Shown: positions 10,501 to 56,041, counted from the first letter of the stretch. The stretch: 64,000 bases of DNA from Monocercomonoides exilis PA203 (GCA_001643675.2 LSRY02000016.1:682001-746000), one strand, 5' to 3'. Notes: generated by a model not told the origin, from the letters alone. Numbers and translations are program-made.

Positions 10501-11433
10501 TTGTTAAAAGTGAGACTCGCAATGAAGGAATGGTCGAGGAAGAGGGAAATGGCTGAGAGGAGAAGAAAATAAAGAAAATGAATGACACAAATTCGCAGAG
10601 AAAGCTTTTAAAGTTTTTCAGAGAGATAAGCAATGAAGCAGTATAACGAAAAATTAATTTGGAAAACATTGGAGATAAAAAAAAGACAATATGAGTTGCA
10701 TTTTCAAATGTGGGATAAAGATGAAAAAGAGCAGAAACTGAAGAAAAATGAATGGAGGATAAGAAAGAAGCTGAATGGGAATGTAATATGAAGAATAAAG
10801 AGAAAAAGAAGAGTTTTTGAAAGTGGTAATAATTAATTAATGTAACTCCTTCATTTTTTGAAACGATATTTGCTGAATCTGTTGAACTGCTCAGCTGAAG
10901 CAGAAAGTTAATGATTAAGTTTCAGCTCGATTAATATAAAATAAAATGCATGTTATTTGAAAGAAATGTTATTTTGTTCTTTTATATCCATCAACATTGT
11001 TCAATAAATTTAAATTTTCTTTATAAGTTTTGTTTTCACAATTATGATATTACTATTTTTCTTTGAGAAGTTTGAATTTTCTATTAAAAGAATTTTTTTT
11101 AATTGACTTGATCAAAAAAACCTTTTACACTTAAATCATAAAAGAGGTATGTTTTTTTGCATATTAAAATGAAACAAACATATATTACAGATATTTAAGC
11201 TGAATATTTGCAAAAAATCAAATTTTCTCTTTGATCAATAAATACCACTATAGATTTTATTTTTTTTCAATTTTTGATCTTTTTCATGATATCAAAAAAA
11301 ATCACCCATATATAGTTATTAGTGAATCAAATTTTTTTTGTCTTGTTCATAAAAAGCTTGAAAGTCTATATTTTCTAACCCTGGGTGACGTGAAGAAAAA
11401 AGCTCGCCACGTCCGTCACCTATTTTCCACTTC

Positions 11434-11464
<31 letters not shown>

Positions 11465-11539
11465 TAGTAGAAAATAAGAATTATTGGCATATTCACAGAG
11501 AACGGGGCAGCTTTGATCTGACCCAGTATTTTTTTATTT

Positions 11540-11699
11540 TTAGGGTAAAAATTTCAAAATAATCACTGTATTAATTGCTTGGTTTAGGTTTTAGGGTTAG
11601 CGTAACAGATCTTGGGTTTAGGGTTATGTTCCCGCTCTTCTTTTTAGGGTTAGCACTCAAAAAAATATGATCTTGTTTGGATTTTTAGGGTTAGGGTTA
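11540..11699 (+). repeat. Cluster of six dispersed telomere-type TTAGGG motifs (consensus TTTAGGGTTA)
   Basis: TTAGGG at 11540, 11591, 11618, 11644, 11685 and 11691, all on the + strand and directly upstream of the tRNA-like cassette. Confidence 0.8.
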
Positions 11700-11735
11700 A
11701 GCCAGGTTTAAGTTGAGTCATAAGAAAGTAAAGCT

Positions 11736-11832
11736 GGGCTTTGGCTCGAGTAGCGTAAGCGGTAGCTACCTCGACCATTGATATTCCGTTGGTCAAAGGT
11801 CGGGGGTTCGACTCCTGCCAAAGCTCTTTTTT
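11736..11832 (+). ncRNA. tRNA-like / tRNA-derived Pol III cassette (non-canonical; no anticodon assignable)
   Basis: A-box-like TAGCGTAAGCGG at 11751 and B-box GGTTCGACTCC at 11805-11815, preceded by a variable-loop-like AGGTC. A 10-bp closing stem pairs GGGCTTTGGC with GCCAAAGCTC. A T6 terminator follows at 11827-11832. Confidence 0.7.
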
Positions 11833-12626
11833 CTGTGTTTTTTAAATTTTTTTTCATTAAAATTTTTTTGCCCCGTTCTCTGTGAATATACCTAATTATT
11901 ACATATATTTGATTAACATAAATCGATAATTTAATTTTCTTTCTTTCTTTCTTTCTTTTTTTTGTGACGTGAAAAAATCTGTTAAGTCCGTCAAAAATCG
12001 AAAAAGTCACGTCAGAAGCCACCACGTCACCCAGGGTTAATATTTTCCCCCACATGTTCATGAAATTTTATTATCAATTTTGTTTATAAAAAATAATTTT
12101 TTTTAACAAAAGAATTTTAAATTACAAACTTCAAAACTGTTCGATCCATCAAAACAGTGAAATAAAAGTGTTATTTTAAAATAGCATGATTATTGCGTTA
12201 AATAACAATTTTTTTTGAAGAGTTGAAATGGGAAAAAATTTTTTCGTTTATGAATTATGTTCCACATAGTTCTTTCAAAGATTTTTTCTCGATTTTTTAT
12301 ATTTTTTTAATTTATTTTGAACAAAAATTTTAGAATAATAATCATACGATTACATAAAAAGTTTGGTACAAATCATTGAACTTTTTTTTAAATGAAATGA
12401 AAACTCTCCTTAATCTCTAATTGGGATAAAATTTTTTCATTTATGAAAGAAATAACGATTTGATCCAAACTTTTTCTCAAACCTTATCATTAAAAGTCCT
12501 TCATTCCCATGTCAAAAAAATACAGAAAAATACTAAAATTGAGAAAAATATTTGTTTGAGAAGAATGGAACAAAATTCATTAAGCAAAATATTTCGTCCC
12601 AATTGTTCATTTGGCCCTTAATTAAA

Positions 12627-19388
<6,762 letters not shown>

Positions 19389-20470: not shown

Positions 20471-23400
20471 TTACCACGAGTCTGTAATCATCTGCTTTTC
20501 ATCTGTCTCGATGATTCTCTTCTTCTTCTTCTTCTTCTTCTTCTTTCTTTGAATGTGTTCATCAGATTGCATTTCAGGAATTTTTTCATCAGATTTTTCA
20601 GGTATCTGTGCCTCTTCCTCCACAATATCATCATTCTTCACATTTTTCTGTTCTTTACCTGGCTTTGAACCTGATTCACTTCCTTTCGTCTTCTCGCTCA
20701 TCAACATAGTCAGCTGCTGATAATGTGAAGAATAAGTTGTTGCTCCGAATGACAATGCAAATGGATCAAACATGCTTGTTTTCGATGGAGACAGATCTGA
20801 ACGGCGAGTCGAACGAAGCTTGGCATTTGTGGCATTCAGCGAATCATCAGGCTTTCTGAGAGTTCCCTTAAAGTACTGAATTTGCTCTGTCTGATTGACA
20901 ATATGAGGCTCCGGTGCTGGTTCTGTGCTTTTCGCACGTTCAGTTGAAAATTGCGACAGAGTACCGCTTTGAAAGGTCGATGCATTTGCTGAACCGTCCA
21001 GCGATGAGCTGATTATTTTCTCGCGCTGATATTTCGGCTTTGAAAGACGTTCAAAAAGTATGTCTTGCTTTGACGATTGTGATGAGCTTGCTTTTTGTGT
21101 TGCTTCTGACTGGCTCGATGAACAGACTGTAGGATTTGAAGAATCTGTACTTGTTCGAGGAGAAAGAGAGAAATTGAATGAAGAAATAGAAGGAATGAAG
21201 GTGCATTCTTTTAATTCATTTTCCTCTTTTTCCATCCGCTTTTCATCTCTCTCGGCCATTTTTCTTCCGCCTTCTCTGTAAAGCATCTCAATTCGAGCCT
21301 GACGCTTTGACATATCATCAGAACGCTTAGAGCGAGAAAGCGCATTTGAAGCACTCGATTCATTTCCAGATGATTGAGTTTCAGCCAGCCCTGATTCTTC
21401 TGTTCCAATGCCTGTTATCTTTTGTTTCTGTTTAGCTGGTAGTTTTTGCTTCGTCTTTATTTTGTCCGTTCTCTTTTTGTCTGATTCATCAATATCGTTT
21501 GCTTTTGTTTCTTCAGATGAAATGTTTGCACGAATTCTGAGTTTTTGAGTTTGTGCAGGGGTTGTTCTTGCAATGAATGTTGGTAGAATAGAAGCTGTTC
21601 TTGTTACACGCTTAGTGGATGATGATGCATAAGATTGAGTTTTCTTTGAATTTGCCTGAGCAATTTGACTCTTTGATGAATCAGAAACTGATTGTGGTTG
21701 CTTTTGAATTGATGAACTTGAGGAATCAGAAGCAGAATTCTGTTCAGCTTCTGAAGGAAGCGAAGATGATGTAAATTGCATTTGATTGCTGTAAGCTTTA
21801 TCATTGCTCTTTTCCTTTGTTTTTGTTATCACCTCTTTTCGTTTTTCTTTGGCAAACGACATTTTCTTTTTTGCTTTTTCTTCATTATCTTCAAATAACG
21901 GGCAGTGAAGATGTGATGTTGCGAAGGATGAACGCTTCAGCAACTGAAGTGTGGACAGAAATGATGTGAATGAAAGATGGAACGTGTTTGGTGGATTGGT
22001 AAGTGAAGATGACTGTGAAGAAGAAGAAGAAGAAGATGATGATGATGATTGCTCAGATTTCTCTTCTTCGTGTGATGCTTTCAAAGCACGTGGTGAAGTG
22101 GATGATTTAGCAAATGATGCTTTGTCAGCAGCTTCCTTCGAAGGATAAGCAGAGCCTGATTCTCTGAAAGGTGACGGAGAGCGAAATGCAGACGAGCTGC
22201 TTCTTGCAGCAGGCGCAGAGGAGTTCATACTTCTTGAAGAAGAACGAAGAGATGTAGAAAAAGTGTTATAGGCAACGTTGAAAGATTGCTCAACTGCCTC
22301 AGAAGCTGTTGTGTGGATGAAGTAATAGACGTCAGAAAAGAATGGAATGGATACAGTTGGTTGAGATGATGAAACAGAGCCGCCTGAAGATTTTGGCTCA
22401 GCAGAAGATGCTGAAGCAGAAACAGAAGTTGGAGCAGAAGAAGATGATGCAGAGGCTGTTGATGCACATGTAGGAAGTTTTTGCGGAAGATAAATATTCA
22501 CAACTTGTAAAAGAACTCTGACAACAGCATCAGAAACCAACAGAAGGCGAAGAGGTGCAAACAAAGATAGATCGACATCTAAATACAATCCTTTTTGAGA
22601 GGAAGAAGCGGTTGAAGTGGAACGAGAGGTTGATTGATCATCTGAACTTGTTGCAGAAGAAGATGAAGCAGATGTTGATTTTTCTGAGAAAAATGACTCA
22701 TAACTTTCAGTCAGAATATCCCTCATTTTTCTGAGTGTTTCTTTTTGTTTGTCTTCTTTGATAAGTTCAAAAGACATAAGTGACTTCGAAATGGATGAAG
22801 ATGCTGAGTATGATCTTGTTGCTGTTGAAGAAGTGGATTCCTTTGAAAATACATCTGCTTCGAGTGAATTGTTCTCTTTCTCCTCTTTTCTATCTTCTTT
22901 CCCTTCTTCCTCTTCTTCCTCTTGCTTTTCTTCTCCTTTTGCAGCAGTCTCATTTCTCAGCTTTTCTTCCTTTTCGTCAGAACATACAGCCCAAAGCAAA
23001 CTCCACATTTCCAGAATTCTTTCTTTGCCTTTTTCTCTTCCAGTTTTTTCAATTTCCTTTTTCAGCTTTTCGGCCTCAGCTTCCATTTTTTGCATCTTCT
23101 TCTTTTCCAATTCCCTTTCCCTCTCTCTTTTCTTCTCCTTCTCCTCTTCTCTTTCCTGCTGTCTTTTTTTGATCTCCTCCTTCAGCGCTTTCTTCTTCTT
23201 CTTCGACATTCTCACAGGCTTCGGCAGTGTCGACTGAGGATACACTGCATCTAAATAAATCGAAGACTGAGAATTGTCTGAAGGAGCACCTTGGCCAAGT
23301 ATCTGAACAGGAAGAGGATTTATCTCTGGTGTGAAAGAGAAAGGAAGAGGCGGAGGATTCCGCTTTTGATACTCAATTTTCATGCCTTCTGTGTAAAGTC

Positions 23401-26400
23401 GGCTAAACACCTCTTCTTTTTCTTCAGAACTTGCATCACTTTCATCATCATTTTCTTCGTCCTCATTGCTTAATTCATCTTCTCCATCAAGTTCCTGCTC
23501 AACAGATTTTCTGTTGTTTTTAGCATTTGATGGATGCTCAGATCTTGAATCATCATAATTGTCAGCTTCCTTCTCTTCTGTTTGCCGTTCGCTTCTTTCT
23601 GTTCTTTTCAACTTCAATTTTGTTTTTGCTTCTTTTTCTTTTCTTTTCTTGATTTCTTCTGGAAGTTGAATGATCTGTGGTGCAAACGTTACTCCTTCCA
23701 TCTCTTTCTCCTGTTTCTTCCTCTGCTCTTCTTCATGCCATCTTCTTTGTGTTTGAACTGATGTTGTGTACAATCGATCAATCAAATGATCCAACTCCTT
23801 CGTCGAAAGCTGCTTTAACTTCCCTCTTTGGTTGGTTTGCGTTTCCAATAGTTTGGATTCTTCATTCACTTCGTTTGTATTCTCTGTATATTCAATAACA
23901 TTTTCTTTCTGTTTGTCTTTTGCATTTTTTTCACTTTTTTCTTTTCTTGCATCTTTTGCATTAATATTTTCTTTTCTATTCATTTCGGTTCTTTCTTCTT
24001 TCCCTTTTTTCCCTCCTTTTCCTTGTTTCTCATCTTTTTCGTGCTCTTCAATAATTTCTCTGGTATTCTCCTTCTCCAATTGCTTTGTTGCTATTGGTGA
24101 TGTCTGACGGTTAATTGGCACATAATTCAATATTTGCGGAGAAAAAGTGCTTTCTTCTTCTTCTTCTTTCTCCTTCTTTTCTATCTTTTCTCTTCTCAGC
24201 TGTTCGTATTCTTCTTCTTTCTTCTTCCTGATCATTATATCTTGTGTCATCCTCAGAACAACTGGAGAAATCTTTGTGCTTGCTAAAGGAGAAGAAAAAG
24301 GAGAAGAGGTCGAAGAGGCAGTAGAAGAAGCAGACAAAGAGGAAGATGTTGCTCTGTGTGTTTTCGAAGGTGACGGTGTTGCAGAAGCAGCTGGCGACGC
24401 ACCAAAACTGAACCGCGGAGAGGAAGAAGAAAACGGAAATGAGCTTTGTTTTGCTCGAATAGGAGATTTCCTCGAGTTTAGCGCTTCCTTTTGCCTTTCT
24501 TCGATTCTTCTTTTTCTCTCTTTTTCTTTTTCTTCTCTTTTCTTTGCAATTCGCTCTTGTCTCTTTCTTTCTTTCTCTTTTCTTTTCTGCCTTAAAAGTT
24601 GCTTTTCCAAAAGTTTATTGTCATAATCTTGAAGTCTTCCAAAGTCTTCTTCATCATTTTCTTCGTTTTCAAATTCTCTTCTTTCTCCGTCTGCAATAGG
24701 AGTTTCTAATGACGATGAATAATTCTGTTTTTTGTGTGAGTTTCTTAATGTCTGCTGCTTTGATGGTGAACAAAGTTTTGGTGAAGTCGATTCAGATTGA
24801 GAAAATGTCTGAAGAGGCTGTGGAGGTGTCATTAGTCCACTGTAATCGCTTTCTTCATCTGCTTCCTCTTCCTCATATTCACTTTCTTCCTCTTCTTCTT
24901 CTTCCTCTTCCTCTTCTTCTGTCTCATTTTCTCTCTCCTTTTTTTCTTTCATTTCTCTCATTCTTTTTTCTATGTCACATCTCAACGAATTCTTGATGAC
25001 TGTTTTGATTTTCTCTTCTTTCGCCAGAAATCCGTTTTGTTCGCAGAATTTGTGGATTTCTGAGTCAATTCGTTCTTCCTCTTCTTTTGCCTCTCTTTTT
25101 CTTTCCATCCTTTTTTTCCTTCTCAACTCATTTGCCTTCTCATCATTGCCATTATTTTCTCCTTCTTCTTCATCTTCTTCAACAGATGGAATTGTTGCAA
25201 CAAATGAAAAGATGACTGGAGAAGCAGAGGAGGGAGAAGAAGAAGACGCTGATGTGGATGTCGGCTTTATCACAACTTGAAAGAGCATCGCTGATTTGTC
25301 ATCAGCATCTGTTTTTGCTTTTTTCTTTTCTTTGGCTTTTTCTGCCTTTCCATTTTTAGCAGCTTCTTCTTCCTTCCTTTCTTTAACTTCTTTTTGTGCT
25401 TTGGATTTCTGAATTTCAGTCTTATCTTTTTGGTTTTCTTTCAGTTGTTTCTCTTCTTTTCTTTGATTTTCTTCTTCTTCTTCTTCTTCATTGCATTCAT
25501 CTGGTTTTTCCTTTTCTTTTCCTTGAGATTCTTTATCTTCAATGATTTGAGGTGCATTATCTTCATTTTCCAATTTCTTTTCAACTCCTTCCAACTTTTC
25601 ATTCTCTTCCTCCTCTTTCTCTTTCTCTTTCTCTTTCAATCCGATAATGCAATGTATTTTGCCATCACACGCATGAAAAACTGTTGGCTTTAATTGAGAA
25701 GACTGAGTTTCTTCTTCGAACTCCAACTGGTCTAATGCATTAGACTTTTCTATGTTCTCAAATATCTTCTCTGAATCGGTGCAATTCTCAAATACATTTT
25801 TCTCAAATTCGATCTCAAATCCCAAATTTGTGTTCACAAAAACCGTTTGCTTTTGTAATGATGCCATTTCACTAGAAGAAAGAAGAATAGATTTTTTCAA
25901 TTCACACATATCACTTGATTCAGAAGAAGGAGAAGAAGAAGAAGAAGAAGAAGAGGAAGAGGAAGAGGTTTGATAGAAGTCATCTTCCTCTCCAACACAT
26001 GCAATTTGAACATTCGTAAATGAAATATGTAAATTGTCGATTTCTCCGTCTTTCTCAAAACTTGATGGGTTTGCTAGCAGCAACCCATCAACAACATCTT
26101 TCACTTGAATCCGGAACAATAAGCTGTGCAAATCAACAATATCTTCCATTTTATATGGGCCAAATAAAAGTCGACACGGTTGATTATCTGGAAATGAAGA
26201 GGAAGAGGAAGAGGAAGAGGAAGAAGAAGAAGAGGAAGAGGAGGAAGAGGAGGAAGGAGAAGAAGATATTGAAGCTGCAGACGAAGATGAATTGCTAGTT
26301 ATCGATTCTGAATTATTCTTTCCAGCAACTGAAGATAAATGCCGATCAGCACTCTCATCACTTAAATCAGTTCTTTCTTCAGTTTCATGTGGTAAATCCG

Positions 26401-29297
26401 AAGAAGGAGATAGATTTAATATGCTTTTAATAATTTCCTTTATCGAAGTTTCTTTTGGATCACTTAGATCTTTTGCAGATTCATTGGAAGAAGAAGAAGC
26501 AGAAGCAGCAGCGGAAGATGAAGCAGCGGAAAATGGCTCCAAAGCTTCGACAAATAAATGCGATGAAACAGTTTCAACGTCCTCGCCAACTTCATCTTCT
26601 TCCTCTTCTTCGTCATCGTCTTCATCCTCACTTTCATCTTCATCTTCATCCTCCTCATCTTCTTCGTCGTCCTCATCATCATTGCTATCATCTTCAACCA
26701 TCACAGCTGCTCTAAATTTTTCGTCTTTGTCTTTCGGTTTTCCATTTTCTCCAAACAAGTTATCAACACCAGGATCTGTCTGTGCGATTGATGGCAACTC
26801 CTTTGATTCCTCTCTTTGTGAAGTTGCATTCTCTTCTTTCATTGCAAATGCTTCTGCTGAATGGCCAGTGCGTTCGTTTCTTTCGTCTTTTGCTTCTTCG
26901 ACTTTATCTTTTTCATCCTCTTTTGATTCTTGCAATTGAACTTTGTTTTCTTTATCAGAAGAGGTTCTATTTTTCGTCACGAATTCTTCTTTTCCTTCAA
27001 ACGACAAATAAAACTCTTTGAACATCCCAAAAAGATACTCAGCCCTTTTTGCCTCAATTTTGAACTCCAAAACATCATTCATGCTTTGCGAAGTCACCAC
27101 AACTTTGCCATCATCCAATGAAGAGTCATTTGAATTTAATGCTTTTTCCTCATCATTTTGATTTTCATATGAATGTTGAATTAATCGTGTTGATATCTTT
27201 TCAATCTCAGGATTGATCAAAAACAGACTCAGTCCTGTGTCTATCCATTCTTCTTCTGCTAAATTTGGAGAAGTTGAACCATTCACATCTTTTGACGACT
27301 CAGATTGCGCATCTTTGCTGCTGTTCGTTTTAATCCATATTTGCATTGGATGCACATTTCTTTGATTTTCTGTCTGTTTTTGGGCTTCTTCTTTCTTTTC
27401 TTTGTAATTATTTTCTTCTTCTTCTTCATTTCCAATATCTGTCTCAAACGTAACAAAAAGCTGATTATCTTTTCTTTCTTCTCCCACAATTTTTGCTTTG
27501 CGTAACTTGAATGCATCATCAACAACACAAATGTCTGTTATTGATAACGACTGCACACAATTAGAATTGTTTGGAGATTCATCTGCTGATGCTTCTGCTG
27601 GAGGATCAAAGAAAATCGCAAATGAATGCTGCATTTTCTCTTTGAAAAGAGAAATATGAAGATTAGGCGGCTGAGGAAATGGAAGCTGAAGTCCCAAAGA
27701 AGAAGTGAACTCCTCGCTTTGATTCTGATGAGAAGAAGAAGAAGAAGAAGCGGCTGCTGTAAATGACTGACTGTTTTTATTCCATTTGGCAAGAAGATTG
27801 AAACAATCTATTGGAATTGATTGCGGCTGGGCTGCAAGTTCTGCGGAACATTGCCCGTTTGTAGAAGAAATTGTGTTTGGCGAAGAAGAAGAAGAAGATG
27901 ATGATGATGATGATGATGATGATGAGATCGTAGACGATTCTGGAGCATTAAGCTGTAATTTCTCTTTGGTTGATCTCTTTTCATTTTCAACTTTGCTCAT
28001 TTTGTTGTTTTCATCTGAGTTTTCTTCAGCCAAGTTGAAAGGATTGACTTGCTCCAAGATTGAATGAAGTGACGAAATAATACCATGAAATGACAAAGAG
28101 GAAGAGGAAGAGGAAGCAGAGGAAGAAGAATTTGCTTGTGAATTGCTTTGCTGAAGTGTTTCCGAAGTGCGTTTTGGATAATAATGCGGAAATGACAAAC
28201 GCAAAAATGAATTGAAATTAGAGAAAAATTCGTGAATGTGATTGTCAAGATGATAATCAGAATTATTATCAATGTTATTTTTTGTGCAGGAAGAAGGCAA
28301 TGAATCATTTGAACAGCGGAAAGAAACGAGCGAAGTGCAACTGGAAGGAAAAGATGTTCCAGCATATTCATTCAGAAGACTTGATGTGGAAAGAAGGAGC
28401 ATTGGAGAAGGAATCGAAGAGCAGAAGATTGAAGATAAAGACGTCAAAAAAGGAGGAAGAGAAGAAGGAGAAGGAGAAAGAGAAGGTAAATCTGAAGCGG
28501 AAGTTGAAGCTGAGGCTGAAGAGGAAGGTGCGTTGTTTGAAGAAGAAGCATCAGAATCAATTCCATCCTGTGAATGCTGCTCTGAAGCTCGAAGTGATTC
28601 AGCTCTTTCTTGGCACAAAACGTTCTCTGCTGCTTGATGAAATGCTTTTAAATGAAACAAGTCATCTGCAGACAGCTTTTTCAGCTGGTTAAACACAGAT
28701 GCTACAAATATCATGACATCACATATTGGACATCCATCAACGCTGAAATTTGAATATTGCATGTTATCCCCTTCTTTCTTTTCTTCCTCTTCTTCTTCTT
28801 CTTCTATCGAATCTTGTTTATTCAACAATTTTTCCAAGTTGAGATGCGTATGCTGTTCAGTGTCTTGCTTATTCTTTTCTTCCACATTTTCTATTTTATT
28901 TTCTTTGTCATCATCACAATTACCTTCTGCTTCTGCTTCTCTCTCTCCCTCTGCTTCTTCTGTTTCGTCTGAGTTTTGCTGCAAACGGAACATATCGTCG
29001 AATATGTGTGTGATTTCTTTTTTCAATGCGAACAGATATTCGGTGGAGCAAAGTGGAAGAGGTGGATCAGAAGAACAAGGAATTGCAGAACAGTTCAATC
29101 CAGGTGATGCAGCAGAAGAAGATGAAGCGTCGAGATTACCATTTGGAAATGAATTTGAAGAGAGATTTTCTTGCTTCGCAAAATTCGCTTTCTGCACTTT
29201 TGATAAATAACCATAGGAATTATTTCGATTATTTTCCTCTTCCTCTTCTTCTTCTTTGTCCTCTTCTTCCTCTTCCTCTTCTTCTTCCTCCTCCTCC

Positions 29298-29329
<32 letters not shown>

Positions 29330-30958
29330 TTCTTCTGTATTTGTTTCTTTTGCTTTGTTTTTTACGAGCAATGAATCACATCTTTGCTCCCAAATGTTCA
29401 CAGTTCCCATAATTTTCAGAAGAAATAGGGAAAGAAAACGAAGAAGAGACGAACACAAATTTCTGTCTCTAAAAGCCGAATGCTCTGAACAATTGGCCAA
29501 ACTCATTAAACCTTGCTGAAATGATGGTGCTTCAGTTGAATTTCTGCATAAAAGAGAAGAATTCATTTCTTGTTCTTCAAATGTTGGAGATTGGTTTCCG
29601 TGAAGTCCCCCAAAACGACAAGATGCTTTGCTTAGCAGCAACGTTAAATAAAACGAATAAAATGACTCAGACGTGCGCAAATGGGTGGAAAGCGATGAAG
29701 AAAAGGTTGGGAAGAAGTAGCAATCGAGAGAAGACGATGCATCAGCACGATTTGAGTTGAGAAGATTGTGGTAGTCAGAAAGAGAAAGCGAAGGCATGTA
29801 GCTTGGCAGAAGGCAAGCATCCATTTGTATTTTGCGAGATGAAGTTGGACACTGCTCGATTTCATCTGCAGCAGAAGAGAGCTCAAACAGGATTTCTTTC
29901 TTCTCTCCAAAGCAGAACGTTCCCAGCGGAAATAAATACAGTTCCTCAACTATTCTGTTGGATTTCTCAGACAAATCAGAAAGAACTGTTTTTGAATCCA
30001 AGCCATCCAAGCGGAATTGGCTCAGATTCATGTTCATATCCTTTCCAGTTCCATAAATTGCTTCGAGGAATTTCTTTATGTGTTTTGAATCATCTTCTCC
30101 TTGTTCGTATTCTGCATTTAGTCCTGCATCCTTCATACTATTCAACATTTCCATATTTGCTTCGTTCGGATTGCTTGTTGCAGCACAATCTGCTATTTGT
30201 TCATTTTGTCTCTGATCTGATGCTTCTGAAAACATCGAAAGATTTAAATTTTTTCTATTTGGCTTTTCTTTAATACCAAAAGGCAACGAGGTTAAAAATG
30301 CTGAAGATAATAAGTTAACTTTCGTTTCTAACTGTAATTTGGGTGATTTGCTTGAATTTTCCATATCGATTGTAATTTCATCTATCTCCTTTTGATCAAA
30401 TTCTAATTGCTTCACACTTAAAAGCAGACAAGAATTACTTAATGCTAAATTCTTTAGTTTCCATTTTAATGGCATCAGCATTTGTCGGTAGTCTTTTTGA
30501 ATTGCGCAATGATAAAAAGGCGGGGGCTGGGAAAATAAACGATTTAGTTGAACGTTTACTGATTTTATGCATTCAGTTTGTGTAGAATGAAATCCACTGT
30601 TTCTCCAAAGAATTTCACAAAGAATACGACTTAGCTCCTTATTAAATGAGAAAAACTCAATGTGTGAAGAAAGAGACGTCAAGAGCGCATAGTTGTCAAT
30701 AAGCTGCATTTTTAAATATTCTGGTACGTTTTGCGTAAATGTGCACCAGGACCCTTCCACGATTATGACAACAGGAATATTTCCGCGTTTTCTGAGAAAA
30801 AAAAAATTAACATTTGGTTTCAAAAAAAGAGATATCAATGGGGGAAAATACTTATTTCCTCTTGCTTCACATTCAAATAAATTGATCTTCTTCGATGTCA
30901 TTGATATCAAATGTGATATTTCTGTTATCAGCAAGCAAACATCATGAACTTTTTTCAT
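20471..30958 (-). CDS. Giant low-complexity/coiled-coil protein with repeated RLY...FxPxI motifs; true start probably in upstream exons
   Basis: Stop-free ORF of more than 10 kb. There is a probable 60-nt in-frame GT-AG intron at 30792-30851, and more splice-like signals near 31030-31155. Confidence 0.85.
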
Positions 30959-43079: not shown

Positions 43080-46000
43080 TCAGGACAAAATGTTTTCCAC
43101 ACTTTCGCTTCCATTTCCAATGCAAGACGAGCCACCTTCTTCGTTCCCATTTGAAGCATATTGAAGATCAATTGCATCTGAAACTGTCAGAATTGCTGCT
43201 CCTGGTGGAAAATGCCCAATAAGATAGCGCTTCATATCGGTGAGGCTCGGACGCTGCGATGAATGAGACGAAATCGACGCAGAGATCAATTGGCCGAAGA
43301 AGGGAGATGATGCGTTGATTCCATCAAGATTTGGCGTTTCTCCTCGTTGGATCTTCTGCCCAGCCATCTCTGCCTCATATTCTCCAAATGGAATATTCAG
43401 TGTCAGGCACTCCCACAACATCATCCCAATTGAAAACACAACTGATTCCTTTGTTGCTCCCAGCTTCTTGTTGATCAGAAGCTCGGGCGCCTTCCACCTC
43501 ATGCACTCTTTTTGGAATTCATCTTCATCCTCAAAAGCTGACGAAGGAAGAGAGTCATCATCATCATCATCACTTATAGACGTCGCAACAGTTGATGAAG
43601 AGATGGATGATGAATCAGAATCATCAGACGAAAAGTCAGAGTGCATCACAACGCAGATCACCATATGCTCAGAAAACAGCACAATGTGAGGACTGAGATT
43701 GAGCAAAGATTGAAGAGGGTTTTCCATTTCATCAAAGGAGTGGAGTGCAAGATTAGCCACCCAGAACAGGATTTGAGCAGCTGTTTGCTCCCTCTCCTTC
43801 AATGAACCAATTGCCATCTCTTTTGTCTTGTTCCTTCCATGCAACAGCATGAACAGAGAATCCCTCAAGTCAACGATCAGCTTCTCATGAGGGGATGAGC
43901 AGGCCATTGCATCCACCAGATTCGACATCGACGAAGTGGTTGGGAAAAGATCCTCTCCTCGAACAAATGTTGAATCTGTATCTGTGGTTGAAGTGGACGA
44001 GATGGATGGCGAAGGAGTTCTCTTTCTCACCTCTTCCTCCTCTTCCTTTTCATCAATCTTTTCCAGCATCCGTTCAGGAATCTTGTCTGAATCTCTTCCC
44101 AAAATGTATTCAGTTGAGCCACTCTCAGAAAGAAGATGCTCAGACGAATCCGAATGCCCCAAGGTTTTCTCATACACCCTCTTCTTCGTCCTCTCTTCAT
44201 TCTTCTTCTCTGCCCCTCTCTCTGCTCTTCGCCACTGCTCCTCAGGTGACATTTCCATAGTCACCATCTCAAACGCCTTAGAATCCTTCTTCACTGTATC
44301 GTTCACAATTTCTTCAAGTTCTTCTGTTCGTTTTTTTTGCTTTCTCCATCGAATCGTCACAACAATGGAAATAATAAGAACAGCCAATAACACAACCAAA
44401 ATAATAACAATAACAATCCACAATGAACTTGTTTTTGCTTCTCCTTCAACGATTTTTCCATCTCCTTTTACTTCTGATTCACTTTCATTCTTCAAGGTGA
44501 CTGATTTTGTTGAAGAAGGAGCATCCGCATTTCCAAAAAGAATTTTTATTTCTAACTCTTTTTCTCCACATGCAAAAATGTTTGTAGAACAATGAATTAC
44601 ATGCTTCATTTCATTCTCATTTATGAAATCATCATCATCAAAATAATATCTTTCTGTTTTTGTTTCCTCTTCTTTTCTTGTTATCTCGAATGAGAGGTTG
44701 CATGGGAGGAGCAGTGATCCATTGAACAGCAATTGCACATCATTTTCTGATTTTACTGCCCTAACAGAATTAAGCGATGGAACAAAGAAAGGTGAGTGCA
44801 TTCCAGATCCTATCCCAGACAGATTGCATCCTTCATTCAAAATCCACAATGATTCATTTTCACTTTCTGTTCCATTTCCAATCGAATCAAGAATATTAAG
44901 TCTTGCTCCTCCTGTACATAAAATATTTCGACAAATAGAATTATAATTAGGAATTCCAGGTGAGTTTCCTATAAATTCCCCATCTTCAATTAAAACATCT
45001 CCACTTGATACAGAGAGTGCTCCGACAGGCGAATTTGAAAATCTTGAACGTTTAACTTCTGCCGAACATCTATTGACTTCAACAAGTGAAGAGTTCCAAC
45101 TGCATATCTCAGATTCAACAGATTTTGCTACAACTCTTTTTTGCAAAATAAAATTTTTGTCAACAATCTCACTCAAATACTTATTTAGAAAATGTTCTTT
45201 TCTGCTAAAGTTCGCATTTGAAATGCAGTTTTCACTCTTTCTCCAATTCCCATCAAGCACACACAAATCCAATAATAGATGAAACCTACCAGAAAAGGAG
45301 AACACTTCTCCCCTATTTTTCGAAGAGCAACATCCAATACAGCTGCAATTTAGAATCTTCGTATCTTTTCCTTTTCCATTCATATCAAAAACACTTGATT
45401 CGTTCCCTTCGCTCGAAATATTTGTAAACAAACAATGCTCAACTGTCAGCCAATCCAATCGTTCGCTAACTTCCTCTTGCTCTCTTTCACCAAACGAGAT
45501 AATGCTTCCCCTGTTCATCTTGACGTTATTACAATCAATCCGCTCAAGAGTAATATTTTTGTTTGCTTTTTTTCCTTCAAATGCAAACAATGAATTAAGG
45601 CACAAAACAGATGTGACATAAAGACGACACACTTCAATCAAGTTCCCATCCTTGTCCTCCAAAAAAGAGTAATCAAGAATAACGTCTTTACATGTAAAAT
45701 CTCGAATGCAAACTCGACCAAAACCAGTGCATGATATGCACTTGCTTTTGCATTGTACTTCTTCCAAATCACATGACTCAATAATCCCAGTAGACGATTC
45801 AATCAGGATCAGAGAGAATGGAATTAGTCCATAAGTGGAGGGGTTTATTTTGTTTTCAGTATCATCACTTCTACGAACAGATTTGAATTGACATAGCCGG
45901 AGAGCAGCCTCTCCGTGGTGGAAAAGAAACAAGACGTCATGATCCGAACTAAAAGTTGAATCAAACTCAAACTGTTGCCTTTCAACTTCAACATTTCCTT

Positions 46001-49000
46001 TGCAATCAACCAGCCACTCTCTAGTGCGATTAATGTCGCAATTGATACTAATTATTGATAGCACTTTTGTCATGCTCTTTAAAACTAAATCTTCCAGGTT
46101 GCACTCCTCATCAATCCAACTACTTCCACTTACTACAACTCGACTGTCAAACGATTTTTCCAGATGCGTCAGGCCAGAATTCACGCTCAAACATGGCATC
46201 GTTGAGCTCCCGCACATCTTTGAGTTTGTTCCGCCTGGTGAATCGCCGCTCACAAAAATTAGATCACTGTAAAACCCCAATATTAGATCAATTATGTTCA
46301 CATCATCTTCCCCTTCTTCCATCTGATGATCCTTACCATAAATCGCGTTCTTTGTGTTGTATGTTGCCTCTGCAATTTCAAAGTCAAACAGTTCCTTTCT
46401 GATCTGCGTTTCAAAACTCCAGCATTCCACGAATATATCTCGTCCTCTCTGAGCATCATTTAGGATAAAAATATCATCCAAAAATTTAAATCCAGCTGCA
46501 CCCTCTCCAATATTGTTCACGTACACGCCTCCCCCTTTTCCTCTCAGAGCCTTGCACATCATCATCGTTGTACATTCAATCCTCATGCTCGAACCTTCAC
46601 AGCACTCCACATACAATCCTCCTCCTTTTAATGAACTCTGTGTTTCACATCTCGAAATATTTGAACAGTTCACAAGCAAATTCACTCCAGAAGTTTCTAT
46701 GACTTCATTTATGTTGTTGATATTGTTGAATAAGCAAGGACTCAAATCTTCATCTTCGTTTCTCTCTTCAATTTCTCTAACATCGCATCCTTCAACTTTC
46801 ACCACACTTTCACCATTCTTCACTTTCCTTAAATTTGATGTTTTAAGTGTTAAAACGCTTCCATTTTCCATCGATATCCTTTCCATTGTGCATCCAATCA
46901 TTTCAACTGTTGCTCCTTCCTCAAAAGCTACTAGCCCTGTACAGCATGCATTTATCCAAACAATATTCAAATTGCTTATCTCAATCTTTCCCTTTTCATT
47001 GACTTCAAACAAACCTTTTGAACGATCAAATACAATCCCTCCAATCCACCCTGATTCCAATACAAGTTCCCCACATAAAACACTTGCCAACCATTGATTC
47101 CAATATTTTTGTTCAGCTCCCAACTTTCTTCCAAATATGCAACTCCTTGCTCTCACATTTCCCTTTTCAATAGTTATTAGGCTTTGTTTGCATTCTGGTT
47201 CATCGCACCCGCAAAATTCCACACTTTCAACATTAAGTTTTCCGCTTTCGTTCTCTTCTCCAATCTTTAGCTGTCCATGTTTTGATACCACAATTCTCGA
47301 TCCTTTCTCTTCTTTTCCTAACAATTCCACAGTTTTTCCAATTACCGCAACTGTGTTTGAAAGTGCAGATTCTGCTTCAATTACCATCCTTTCCATACCC
47401 ACTCCCATCTGTTTATATCCGCATTCAATACTCAAACACTGAACAGCTTCCCATCCGCAGCACTCAAAATCGATCCCAGTTCCGCCAACATACACACTCC
47501 CTTCCGTGGGCTTTTCCAGATAATAAACCAAGCTAACCTCTCTACTCCGAGCAATTGTAATATCTACCATCCACATCCTTTCCTTTTTCTCAATGCTTCG
47601 CGGTGTTCCTTCCCACAATTCCCGCTTCACAATCTTTTCAGGCTCTGGGCACGTAAGACAAATATCTGCTCCCCGTGAAGCAGTATTCATTTGAAATATT
47701 ATTTCTTTCATCGTCAACTCAGCCACGTTTGATTCAATTGTCAAATCCATTCCTCCTCCACTTCCATCTTCCTCTGATACGAAGCTCTTGCACACACTGC
47801 AGTTCTGCCAGAATACGCGAACTCCTCCGGCAAAATGCCCATTCACTGCTCCTCCTCTGCTTCCTGCTCCTATGCACCCGCAGTTTTCAAATGAGCAATT
47901 TTTCACTTCTATCCCTTTGCCTTCTCCAATTTCCAATTCAATTGCCCCACCGTTCTGGTTCTCCCTCAAAATGTTTGCAAAAGAGCAATTTTCAAAGGAA
48001 ATAGTGCACTGATTGTCAAATGCCATTAGTAAGTAAAAATGAGGATTTGGCGATGAAAATAAAGAATTTGCCAAAGAAAATTGATTAGCGTTTGTTACAG
48101 AAACAATTCCATTTGTGGAAGTAGTAGAAATGTTATCCAAGTTTATTTCTGAGATATTTACTGTTAACATCGAAGCGACAAAAGCAGGGCAATTTTCAAA
48201 AGCCAGGCTTGACATTGAAACCGTTTTCATAATAAGATTACCTCCTGTTGCAGACAGAAGCGAATAAGGAAGAACGTGAGATACTGCTTCTTGTGCAGAG
48301 AGAAGAAATGTACATTTACTGAGAGAAAGAGTGGAGGGATTGGACAAATCAAAAGAGGAGCGGATTAATGAAGATCGATGATTGAGAGAAGATGGAAGAA
48401 CAAAAGAGATTCCACACATCGAAGTTGAAATAGAAGCAAGCAGTAGTTCATCAGACTGCTTTTGTGAAATTCCATTCGCGCTTATTGAAACTGGCAAATT
48501 CTCATCTCCAATCATATATTCGTAACCTTTTAGTTGCGTTTCATGATCAATAATAAATCCAGATCCCAATACTATTATCCTCTTCTGATCATGAAAGCGC
48601 AATGCAGCTGCTTCAATTGTTTTGCAAGGACAATCAATATAGCCGCAACCACTGAAATCTGTTCCTTCGCTCCCATTCACATGCGCTGAACCGCTCCATT
48701 GGCGAAGGAAATACACAAGAGAAAATATGATATCTGAGCCTGCTGATCTTTCCATCCCGCTCAACGCTGACAGGTTGTTCATGTCAAGAGAAAAATTAAA
48801 AGTATCATTGCTCACAATTTCATTCAAAACATTTCCATTAATGAATATGTCCGAACCCGCCTCTGCATAGCACTCTTCAAATGAAACATTTGTCAATGAA
48901 ATTAAGTGAGATGAATCAGAGAAATAAACATAAACACCTCCTCCATATCCACTTTCTCTACTTTGTCCATTCTGTGCTTTACAAGCTCTGCATTTTGAAA

Positions 49001-51283
49001 ATTTTGTGTATTCTGTTCCGTTAACTTCAACTTTACCATCATCTTCCACATAAATGCTCAATGCCCCTCCATTACCATCTTCGCACACACTTTCTTCCAG
49101 CATGCAATTTGATACAATTATCTTTCCTCCAGAGGAAAGTCTTCCTTTAGCTATAGACCCATCTCCATTTGTTCGTGTTAATTTGCTTGAGTTTGTCGAA
49201 ATGATCTCCAAGACACATGTCTCAGCTTCCTGTTCAAAAGAAATTGTACAGCAGCTGGAGAATTTCATCTCAAACATTCTCACTTCTTCCAAAAGGGCAT
49301 ATCCTGTATTCACTTTGAACGCACTTGAATGAACTTCGTTCTGTTCATCAACACAAGAAACATCACATTTCTTCACTGTTGTTTTTCCATTTCCACTCAT
49401 CACCAGAAAACAATTGGATGTACCATTGACTCCATCCATGTGCTTCAAGTGGCAGTCATTAATATCCAAAGTGCCCGTATTCACTGTAAAAACACTATTT
49501 CCTTCAAGTGATCTGATAATTGTTTCTTCTCTCGAAATTCCAGCGATAGAAGCAAGTTCTGAACCAACTTCAATTGTTTCTTCACAGAATACGCAGGAAC
49601 CAGCTTGCACTATCGCATTTGTGTTCGTAGTTAATCTTGTAAGCGAATGCTTCAAAGTTTGGCATAATGGTGCAAAACCACATCCATTATTATCAACACC
49701 TTCATAAAAGTTTGCCCTTATACGGAAATCATCATGGAAATCTGGTAGCCAATATAATGGCATACTCGTTTCACATTTGTAGGTACTCTCAGTGATGCAG
49801 CGAACAACCCTTGTCCCTTCGGACAAAGAATAACATTCAGTAAAATTATCAATCGTCAAAGAATTCCAACCACTATTTAGCGTAATGTGAACATCCATTC
49901 CTCCATCCTGTGGAGCAGAATTGTTCTTGAAGAAACAAAACGAGCATTGAAATACTACAATATCATCAACATTTTGTTCTCCCAGTAAAATGCAAGGTGC
50001 AAAAGTTCTTGCGGTGTTGAATTGAAAAGCATTATTTGAAAGATAAATAGTGGAATTTATGTGGAAAGTATGAAAGGCTCCTGTATATTGTTCACTAGCT
50101 GATCCATTCTCAAAAGTATTAGAATAAAAAACATTGGTTCCAAGCTGAATTGAATATATAATTACATGCCCCTTTCCCTTTGCACTGCTCAATGAAAACA
50201 AAGAAGATTGAGTTTTAGTGTTTGTGAAATTTCTGTAGCAAATAGAACCACCTTCGTTAGCCGCAGAGCAATTCATAAACGAGCAATGATCACAAAAAAA
50301 TTCTCCAGTTGATGAATTTAAGAAAATGGCTCCTCCGCTTTTTGAAGAGTTACATTTTTCAAAAATGCATCTAACAATTGTGAGCGAAGCTTCAGAATCA
50401 CAAAAAATAGCTCCCCCGAATTCTGAATTATTTGAAGAAAAATAATCATCCGTAAATGTGTTATTACCTTGTGAAAAAGTTTGATTCGAATTGTGTTCAA
50501 TGCTGCATTTTTCAAATGAGGAATTACTGCAAATAAAAGAACATGAAGCTGGAGTTACAATTTCTCCGTTGTAAGGGCGTACGCACCTCGTCATTTTTGA
50601 AGAAAACAATTTCACATTTTCATTTCGTCTATTTAAATTATCATGTTTTATGAATTTTGTTGAAAAATTGTCGAAGTTGCAATCTTCAACATTCAACAAA
50701 GATAGGCTTTTGGAACATATAAATGGAGGCGACAAAACTGTTAATGAAGAAAAGTCAGAATGAATCAATGAGACTGTGCCAAGAGCATAATCAAAATGTA
50801 TGTCTGACGAACTTGACACTAGAGATGGAAAATGATTAAAAATTAGTTGTTGGCAAAGTGAGATATTGTTAAAATTGATGATTCCTCCGTAAGATATAAA
50901 AGGACTTTTGCGAAAAACAATTCCATCAATAGAGCAAGAATTCATGTACAGCTTTGATGAAGAGCAAATAGATGCAATGCTGGCGTCCTTAATGATTAAG
51001 AAGTGAAGAGAACTAAAACGAACAGAGCTGTTGGTGAATTTGAAATTATTCTTAAAAATCGATGGACTAAAAATTGTGGAAAAATCATTCATTCTGAACT
51101 TTGTTTTCAGGCTGTATTCATGCTGAAACGAATCTTTTAACATATTTTCGCTGTAATCTTCAAAGTTAAATATGCAACAAAAAGCTAAATTCCAACTTCC
51201 TCATGTATCAAAATATACAAACCTGTTTTTGAATTTATCAAAACAGCACGCATAAATAAAAAGAAAATTATATAAAAATCCAT
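43080..51283 (-). CDS. Type I membrane protein: signal peptide, beta-helix/Pmp-like (GGAI) Cys-rich ectodomain, TM helix, cytoplasmic pseudokinase
   Basis: Exon 1 (51223-51283, MDFYIIFFLFMRAVLINSKT) splices through a GT-AG intron at 51158-51222, in frame, into the 2687-aa ORF. GGAI/GGG and F..C repeats and repeated CG...PC modules follow. TM helix LWIVIVIILVVLLAVLIISIVVTI is followed by RWRKQKKR and C-lobe kinase motifs. Confidence 0.9.

Positions 51284-51739: not shown

Positions 51740-56041
<4,302 letters not shown>

Follow-up and report, generated by a model that had tools for sequence, protein, structure and literature searches.

Small RNA genes of the RNA polymerase III (Pol III) type are normally thought to spread as short interspersed elements (SINEs), that is, by retroposition. 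A locus in the genome of Monocercomonoides exilis PA203 raises the question of whether such a gene can also be carried about by a cut-and-paste DNA transposon and, if so, whether it is still treated there as a Pol III gene. The locus lies in a stretch of 64,000 nucleotides (GCA_001643675.2, LSRY02000016.1:682001-746000), here called the window, and is found ~693 kb into a 1.74-Mb contig. Bare positions below are those of the window, while numbered loci (L) and contigs (C) are parts of the M. exilis genome, which was searched over 82.3 Mb in 101 contigs. At 11376-12039 there is a 664-bp nested element which consists of two non-autonomous cut-and-paste transposons, one inside the other. A reading made earlier from the sequence without other data (the sequence-only reading) had described this nested pair, and every sequence feature it had listed was found in its place, including six TTAGGG motifs, a cassette of the A-box/B-box type and a T6 run, all inside the 664 bp. 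We consider it quite probable that a Merlin miniature inverted-repeat transposable element (MITE) is nested here in a derivative of a probable hAT transposon, and that the MITE carries a gene of Pol III type which comes from its autonomous parent and is treated as such.

A Pol III-type unit built into a Merlin lineage

The inner element is bounded by terminal inverted repeats (TIRs), flanked by a target-site duplication (TSD) and holds the Pol III-type unit in its right part:

11478-11485, no strand: left TSD of the inner element, GAATTATT, matching the right TSD at 7 of 8 positions
11486-11892, plus strand: inner Merlin MITE (family 1), 407 bp, with TIRs at 11486-11509 and 11869-11892
11738-11832, plus strand: Pol III-type unit with terminal stem, A-box-like motif, B box and T6 run
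11738-11744 with 11818-11824: 7-bp terminal stem, GCTTTGG pairing with CCAAAGC
11751-11762: A-box-like motif, TAGCGTAAGCGG
11805-11815: consensus B box, GGTTCGACTCC, which fits the consensus GGTTCGANTCC
11827-11832: T6 run
11893-11900, no strand: right TSD of the inner element, TAATTATT

The unit has the layout of a type 2 Pol III gene, with an A box, a B box of the GGTTCGANTCC type and a run of at least four T after the terminal stem; real tRNA genes of this genome likewise have T-runs within a few nt. It resembles tRNA-derived SINEs in its A/B-box design, T-run, length of ~90 nt and presence in multiple copies, but, unlike them, it is moved as part of a TIR element with 8-bp TSDs, and signs of retroposition are lacking. 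All 18 of its genomic copies are found inside one Merlin family, within Merlin TIRs with 8-bp TSDs, and a SINE was therefore rejected. The earlier proposal that the unit travels as cargo of a cut-and-paste element and not as a SINE thus holds for 18 of 18 copies.

That the inner element is a Merlin-superfamily MITE follows from its ends, its TSDs and its autonomous partner. The TIR pair and the 7/8 TSD seen in the sequence-only reading are present, and the arms, each 24 nt long, are 96% complementary. At least eight further full-length family 1 insertions, 88-96% identical, possess GG...CC termini and each has its own 8-bp TSD; almost all copies begin with GGCATATT and end with ATATACC, with single-base changes at the tip in a few older ones. 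Neither transposon of the nested pair is single-copy, the outer TIR having 180 matches in the genome (see below). Published hallmarks of Merlin, of which at least seven families are present in this species, are 5'-GG termini and a TSD of 8 or 9 bp (PMC8101967). The terminal 5'-GG is conserved in family 1 and perfect 8-bp TSDs were found in L002, L003, L005-L009, L031, L032 and L017. Two copies, L003 and L004 (C30:603813-604232 and 610239-610658), lie in opposite orientation ~6 kb apart with identical flanks, and are an inverted segmental duplication rather than two insertions.

The autonomous element with the inner TIRs, whose existence the sequence-only reading had raised, is L017:187-1694 (C10:32740-34247). 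It is a complete Merlin of 1,508 bp with the TSD TAACATAA, family 1 TIRs and an intact open reading frame (ORF) of 355 aa for a transposase of the DDE_Tnp_IS1595 type; the ORF scores 86.7 bits on PF12762, the Merlin-type transposase domain, which its homologues also carry. This domain has at least 575 candidate places in the genome, one of which, C10:33224-33604, is inside L017. The public annotation models only 231 of the 355 aa. A second, interrupted copy of the autonomous Merlin is situated on C21. In the parent, the ORF is followed on the same strand, after 220 nt, by the tRNA-like unit (L017:1539-1634); then come a T7 run, which ends 36 nt before the right TIR, and this TIR itself. The MITE corresponds to the first 43 bp and last ~195 bp of this parent, with the ORF replaced by a cassette of TTAGGG motifs. 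The MITE has thus retained both ends of a 1.5-kb autonomous Merlin, the 3' end that it kept includes a ~90-nt gene of Pol III type 2 design, and the cassette has taken the place of the transposase ORF. In this respect the cargo proposal stands only in part: the unit is carried by the MITE but was not newly captured by it, being inherited from the 3' subterminal region of the parent. The unit therefore appears to be a heritable part of the Merlin lineage and not a chance capture.

The lineage agrees with Merlin as published, a superfamily related to IS1016/IS1595, in its 5'-GG, 8-bp TSDs, ~24-bp TIRs and a single DDE_Tnp_IS1595 transposase (PMC8101967). It differs in having a Pol III-type gene beside the right TIR and in a TTAGGG-motif cassette shared by its MITE derivatives; the same paper has no mention of tRNA-like units or MITEs.

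tRNA-seeking transposons at the edge of the unit

The unit is a repeated landing site for transposons that are otherwise situated just upstream of real tRNA genes. Six of the 18 copies hold tRNA-targeting transposons at their 5' edge. Five long forms of family 1 (L031-L035) have foreign transposons nested there; as candidates for autonomous parents they were ruled out, since each is a family 1 copy interrupted by foreign insertions at a single spot. Three DNA-transposon families were recognized which sit 0-9 nt upstream of real tRNA genes, and members of all three are also found at the unit.

The first family is pogo-like. In L032 a pogo-like DDE_1 element ending in CCCCGACT stops 13 nt before the A-box-like motif, where 10-15 nt are found at real tRNA genes, and its subterminal repeat architecture matches that of the CCCCGACT-ended family at tRNA genes. 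Of 13 places with this end (2 for the control), nearly all have a tRNA gene 3-8 nt beyond it. The family is found upstream of many different tRNA genes, for example at L076:1430-1499 with CCCCGACT and a TA duplication, and looks like a cut-and-paste element which targets Pol III start sites.

The second family is of the Harbinger type. L033 and L034 contain a 3.2-kb element with a DDE_Tnp_4 ORF (L034:1188-2357), while L035, L031 and L019 (on C21) contain three different short elements, one of them in opposite orientation, so that at least four different inserts or orientations have come to lie at the same site, 7-8 nt upstream of the terminal stem. Elements of this type, with ends AAGTTCTAWT, are present 2-8 nt upstream of tRNA-Thr, Gln, Arg, Ser/Leu-type and other genes (e.g. 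L079, L086). In 15 places a tRNA-type B box follows the end motif, compared with 2 for the control. The majority of the 15 can be recognised as real tRNA genes, and they also include one family 1 unit (C21) and one unit of a second Merlin MITE family described below (family 2; C37:392296).

The third, here called element X, is ~4.3 kb long (L031:651-4978, minus relative to the locus), with imperfect TIRs (AGTGTGTAAAAAAACCGGGA and its partner), a TSD of probably 4 bp and ORFs that gave no Pfam match. Sequences 84% identical to it over 1.5 kb end 7-9 nt before tRNA-Lys(ctt) and tRNA-Arg(acg) genes (L072, L073, L085). Its last 13 nt have 11 exact copies, four of which have a B box behind them at the distance found in tRNA genes; it belongs to a real tRNA gene in three cases and to the unit in one. 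The distance from transposon end to A box is 13-14 nt in the unit (pogo-like and X) and 10-16 nt at real tRNA genes. The Merlin copies that carry nested inserts have different TSDs, and therefore represent separate Merlin insertions. L033 and L034 share the same 3.6-kb composite of Merlin and Harbinger-type element, with inserts 88% identical and different Merlin TSDs; this composite may have been mobilised whole, or the same site may have been hit twice.

Insertion a few nt upstream of tRNA genes is known for the retrotransposons Ty3, Tj1, TRE5-A and DGLT-A, and insertion of Ty3 at the Pol III start site needs TFIIIB and TFIIIC on the promoter (PMC5911963). The clustering seen here is shared with Ty3-type retrotransposons; the differences are that the targeting elements are of the cut-and-paste kind (pogo-like DDE_1, Harbinger-type DDE_Tnp_4 and X) and that their targets include a gene borne by another transposon. 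Read by analogy with Ty3, the insertion record suggests that the unit is probably loaded with a Pol III initiation complex (TFIIIC/TFIIIB), and probably also transcribed by Pol III. The part of the sequence-only reading which expected the unit to behave as a Pol III gene gains from these repeated insertions of tRNA-upstream-specific transposons at its 5' edge. Dada DNA transposons, which Kojima and Jurka reportedly described in 2013, are said to insert inside tRNA and snRNA genes. They likewise link DNA transposons to small Pol III RNA genes, but differ in that here one transposon brings its own unit and others land upstream of it.

Identity and conservation of the unit

It is one thing to have the promoter layout of a tRNA gene and another to be one. 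The B box, A-box-like motif and T6 run that gave the unit its tRNA-like look are all present, but the unit is not a tRNA: ARAGORN found no tRNA in the 64-kb window, and the Rfam tRNA model gave no match to the 131 nt searched even at E<=10, while real tRNA genes score 58-71 bits. Tested against 13 sampled host tRNA species, its best similarity was 56 of 87 positions identical (shuffles 50.4 +/- 1.6), mainly in the T arm; this best global match is only modestly above shuffles, and none of the sampled species was accepted as the source tRNA. Vault RNA (RF00006) was also considered. The alignment to it is weak and runs, in the units of families 1 and 2 alike, through the A- and B-box regions and the T-run, but with 12.2 and 13.0 bits, respectively, against a gathering score of 34 it is at noise level and was rejected. 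The predicted fold of the unit is stable (-34.8 kcal/mol, z=-3.6). In 17 distinct copies, pairing reaches 93% in a rod and 92% in a cloverleaf-like fold, with 2-3 compensatory pairs for each.

Recently amplified copies tell more about which parts of the element matter. Among the six youngest copies, 2 of 85 sites of the unit, 1 of 48 TIR sites and 33 of 274 sites in the rest of the element are variable (unit against rest, Fisher p=0.006), so the unit varies as little as the TIRs do, which agrees with the conservation expected of the tRNA-like part in the sequence-only reading. The unit appears in this light to be a constrained part of the Merlin lineage. A unit of importance to the transposon lineage, but not to the host, would be expected to show this combination of conservation in young copies and decay in old ones, and the decay of old copies itself argues that there is no host-level selection on the unit.

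The TTAGGG cassette and the sister families

Between the left TIR and the unit lies the second distinctive part of the MITE:

11510-11700, plus strand: TTAGGG-motif cassette with six motifs; the core, ~11516-11672, is common to three MITE families

The motifs start at 11540, 11591, 11618, 11644, 11685 and 11691, are equal to the host telomere repeat and all point in the same direction, in the form TTAGGGTT(A). All five matches to TTAGGGTT in the window are inside the element, where ~1 would be expected in the window and 0 of 100 shuffles reach 5. Contig ends bear (TTAGGG)n with some TTAGG units; the telomeric tracts at the starts of C2 and C3 (L039 and L041) mix CCCTAA and CCTAA, while that at the start of C9 is almost pure CCCTAA.

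The cassette has ~51 genomic candidates, apparently all in three MITE families, and its core is 85-90% identical between family 1, family 2 (L020 and others) and family 3 (L093-L100). Its conservation is fairly even along the length and not concentrated at the motifs, where 4 of 36 sites vary, as against 18 of 155 other cassette sites (p=1.0), and the autonomous parent L017 does not contain the cassette. With such neutral-like variation and a parent that lacks the cassette, the role which the sequence-only reading gave to the motifs finds no support, nor does its idea of a mobile telomere seed, since in addition the copy in the window is chromosome-internal. A selected telobox array was likewise rejected, the motifs being no more conserved than their surroundings. 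As far as these comparisons go, three Merlin MITE families have exchanged the cassette as a module, and no constraint on its motifs can be detected. Chromatin barriers in yeast are known to be formed by tRNA genes and by TTAGGG sites bound by Tbf1. The element resembles these barriers in pairing a Pol III-type gene with repeated TTAGGGTTA-type sites, and differs from them in that its TTAGGG motifs show no constraint; an insulator role of the unit together with the motifs is possible.

Family 2 has different TIRs, with 8-bp TSDs. Where family 1 carries its unit, and in the same orientation, family 2 has a structured unit of another sequence (L020:1814-1901), again with terminal stem, B box and T6 run; nine genomic copies of it are present. 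Apart from the B box it has no sequence in common with the family 1 unit. It is no tRNA either, and is predicted to fold into a very stable rod (-42.9 kcal/mol, z=-5.1). Family 3 possesses TIRs of ~110 bp, 8-bp TSDs and the cassette. At C38:95125-97121 a cassette and a family 2 unit are found 1.85 kb apart on the same strand; they may belong to one long family 2 element, possibly autonomous, or be separated by another insertion that landed upstream of the unit.

The outer element and the rest of the window

The MITE is surrounded by the two arms of the outer transposon:

11368-11375, no strand: left TSD of the outer element, ATATTTTC, identical to the right copy
11376-11485, plus strand: outer left arm, including the 17-bp TIR 11376-11392; 86% identical to the left 105 bp of L090
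11901-12039, plus strand: outer right arm, with TIR 12023-12039 and GTGACGT/CACGTC subterminal motifs
12040-12047, no strand: right TSD of the outer element, ATATTTTC

The 17-bp perfect TIR and perfect 8-bp TSD noted by the sequence-only reading are both there: TAACCCTGGGTGACGTG at 11376-11392 has its exact reverse complement at 12023-12039. With up to two mismatches this TIR occurs 180 times in the genome (89 + 91), compared with 3 (1 + 2) for the control, and often in facing plus/minus pairs 2.8-3.4 kb apart. One family member, L090, is 2.9 kb long and has its own perfect 8-bp TSD, ATTTTTAG. The right arm shares 88% identity with the right 100 bp of L090, and 85% with L023:1929-2007. The similarity with L090 is confined to the terminal 100-105 bp on each side, which makes the outer element of the window a 249-bp internally deleted derivative. 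The 407-bp Merlin MITE has thus jumped into a shortened member of a large family. This family probably belongs to the hAT superfamily: short TIRs (17 bp) and 8-bp TSDs are present in the window and in L090, and the TIR pairs C2:1489118/1498121 and C8:56422/68659 enclose, by coordinates only, matches to PF05699 (Dimer_Tnp_hAT) in frames of 900-924 aa. A second close association of a Merlin MITE with an outer-type element was seen at L023:1522-1945 (C30:1025579-1026002), where a family 2 MITE ends 5 bp from the terminus of another outer-type copy.

Elsewhere the window contains very long uninterrupted ORFs of 1,433-3,495 aa, at 20471-30958 (minus), 43080-51143 (minus), 14844-19388 (plus) and 51740-56041 (plus). 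In a Pfam scan of 14844-19388, 43080-51143 and 51740-56041 only 43080-51143 gave a match, to a C-terminal kinase domain. The long ORFs probably belong to the expanded families of kinase type that have been described in this genome.

Weighing the explanations

Several observations do not sit easily with a Merlin MITE in a hAT derivative that carries a gene treated as a Pol III gene. The Pol III inference is an analogy with Ty3 and TRE5-type targeting, and the DNA transposons found here could read DNA sequence alone when choosing their sites. Covariation does not separate the rod from the cloverleaf-like fold. The constraint comparison comes from six related copies only, older copies decay in the unit as elsewhere, and since GC content is 55% in the unit, 33% in the cassette and 10% in the spacer, low variation may partly reflect base composition. 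Family 3 MITEs are without any Pol III-type unit, so it is not required by all Merlin MITEs. As to the outer element, its hAT label goes back to coordinates only and no long ORF was found in three ~3-kb copies of its family (L090-L092). All of these weigh against the explanation we favour, which we put forward as quite probable.

If this explanation is right, we infer that an intact unit aids propagation of the Merlin lineage; it might act through its RNA, or else keep the chromatin at the transposon end open and insulated. A more far-reaching form of it is that the lineage carries an active Pol III gene needed in cis, and that its insertions plant TFIIIC/TFIIIB sites which become landing pads for the three tRNA-targeting families. 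We regard this form as a tentative possibility.

Against this, the unit could be an inert relic of a tRNA, or of the head of an old SINE, that became fixed in an ancestral Merlin; it would then hitchhike with the right end, bind nothing and make no RNA. Such an origin would suit a unit that is no recognisable tRNA, resembles the sampled host tRNAs only modestly and decays in old copies, and it would suit family 3, which manages without it. It is difficult to reconcile, though, with at least six independent insertions from three tRNA-upstream-specific families at the 5' edge of the unit and with a hit on the unrelated family 2 unit. Nor would a relic be expected to keep B box, terminal stem and T-run in both families, or to vary as little as the TIRs do in young copies. 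We consider the relic unlikely.

Some Pol II transcripts are known to be processed at the 3' end through tRNA-like structures. The unit might accordingly be an RNA-level signal for 3'-end processing of the transposase mRNA, cut by RNase P or RNase Z and merely inherited by the MITE. Its position in the parent, on the coding strand past the stop codon and just before the TIR, and its stable fold are what such a signal would show. The oligo-T run and the A and B boxes, however, suit an independent Pol III gene, the fold is not clearly a cloverleaf, young MITE copies which have no ORF still conserve the unit, and tRNA-targeting insertions point to occupancy by a promoter complex and not to RNA processing; this makes a processing signal improbable. 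Finally, the 3' subterminal block might be bound as DNA by the Merlin transposase or by an architectural protein of the host, its tRNA look being incidental. In favour of this are its subterminal position (T-run end ~36 nt from the right TIR) and a conservation which, in the amplifying lineage, is like that of the TIRs. However, the left end has no matching copy, family 2 has the same Pol III features at the same place in a different sequence, and the tRNA-targeting insertions are left unexplained, so that we regard such a site as very improbable.

Meaning for transposons around Pol III genes

Merlin transposons in this species are known. In the literature searched there is no description of a Pol III unit built into them, of the TTAGGG cassette common to their MITEs, or of a link with tRNA-targeting DNA transposons. 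It has been reported that 35% of the M. exilis genome consists of unclassified repeats (PMC8767320), some of which are now assigned to defined families. A Pol III-type gene built into a DNA transposon and its MITEs represents a second route for the dispersal of Pol III promoters and TFIIIC sites, next to retroposition. The nested insertions serve as a natural assay, in which tRNA-homing transposons report what the cell treats as Pol III genes, and the presence of three cut-and-paste families upstream of tRNA genes bears on target-site choice and on safe-haven strategies in compact genomes. If the explanation we favour is true, mobile Pol III sites would give rise to a layered ecology of transposons around Pol III promoters.

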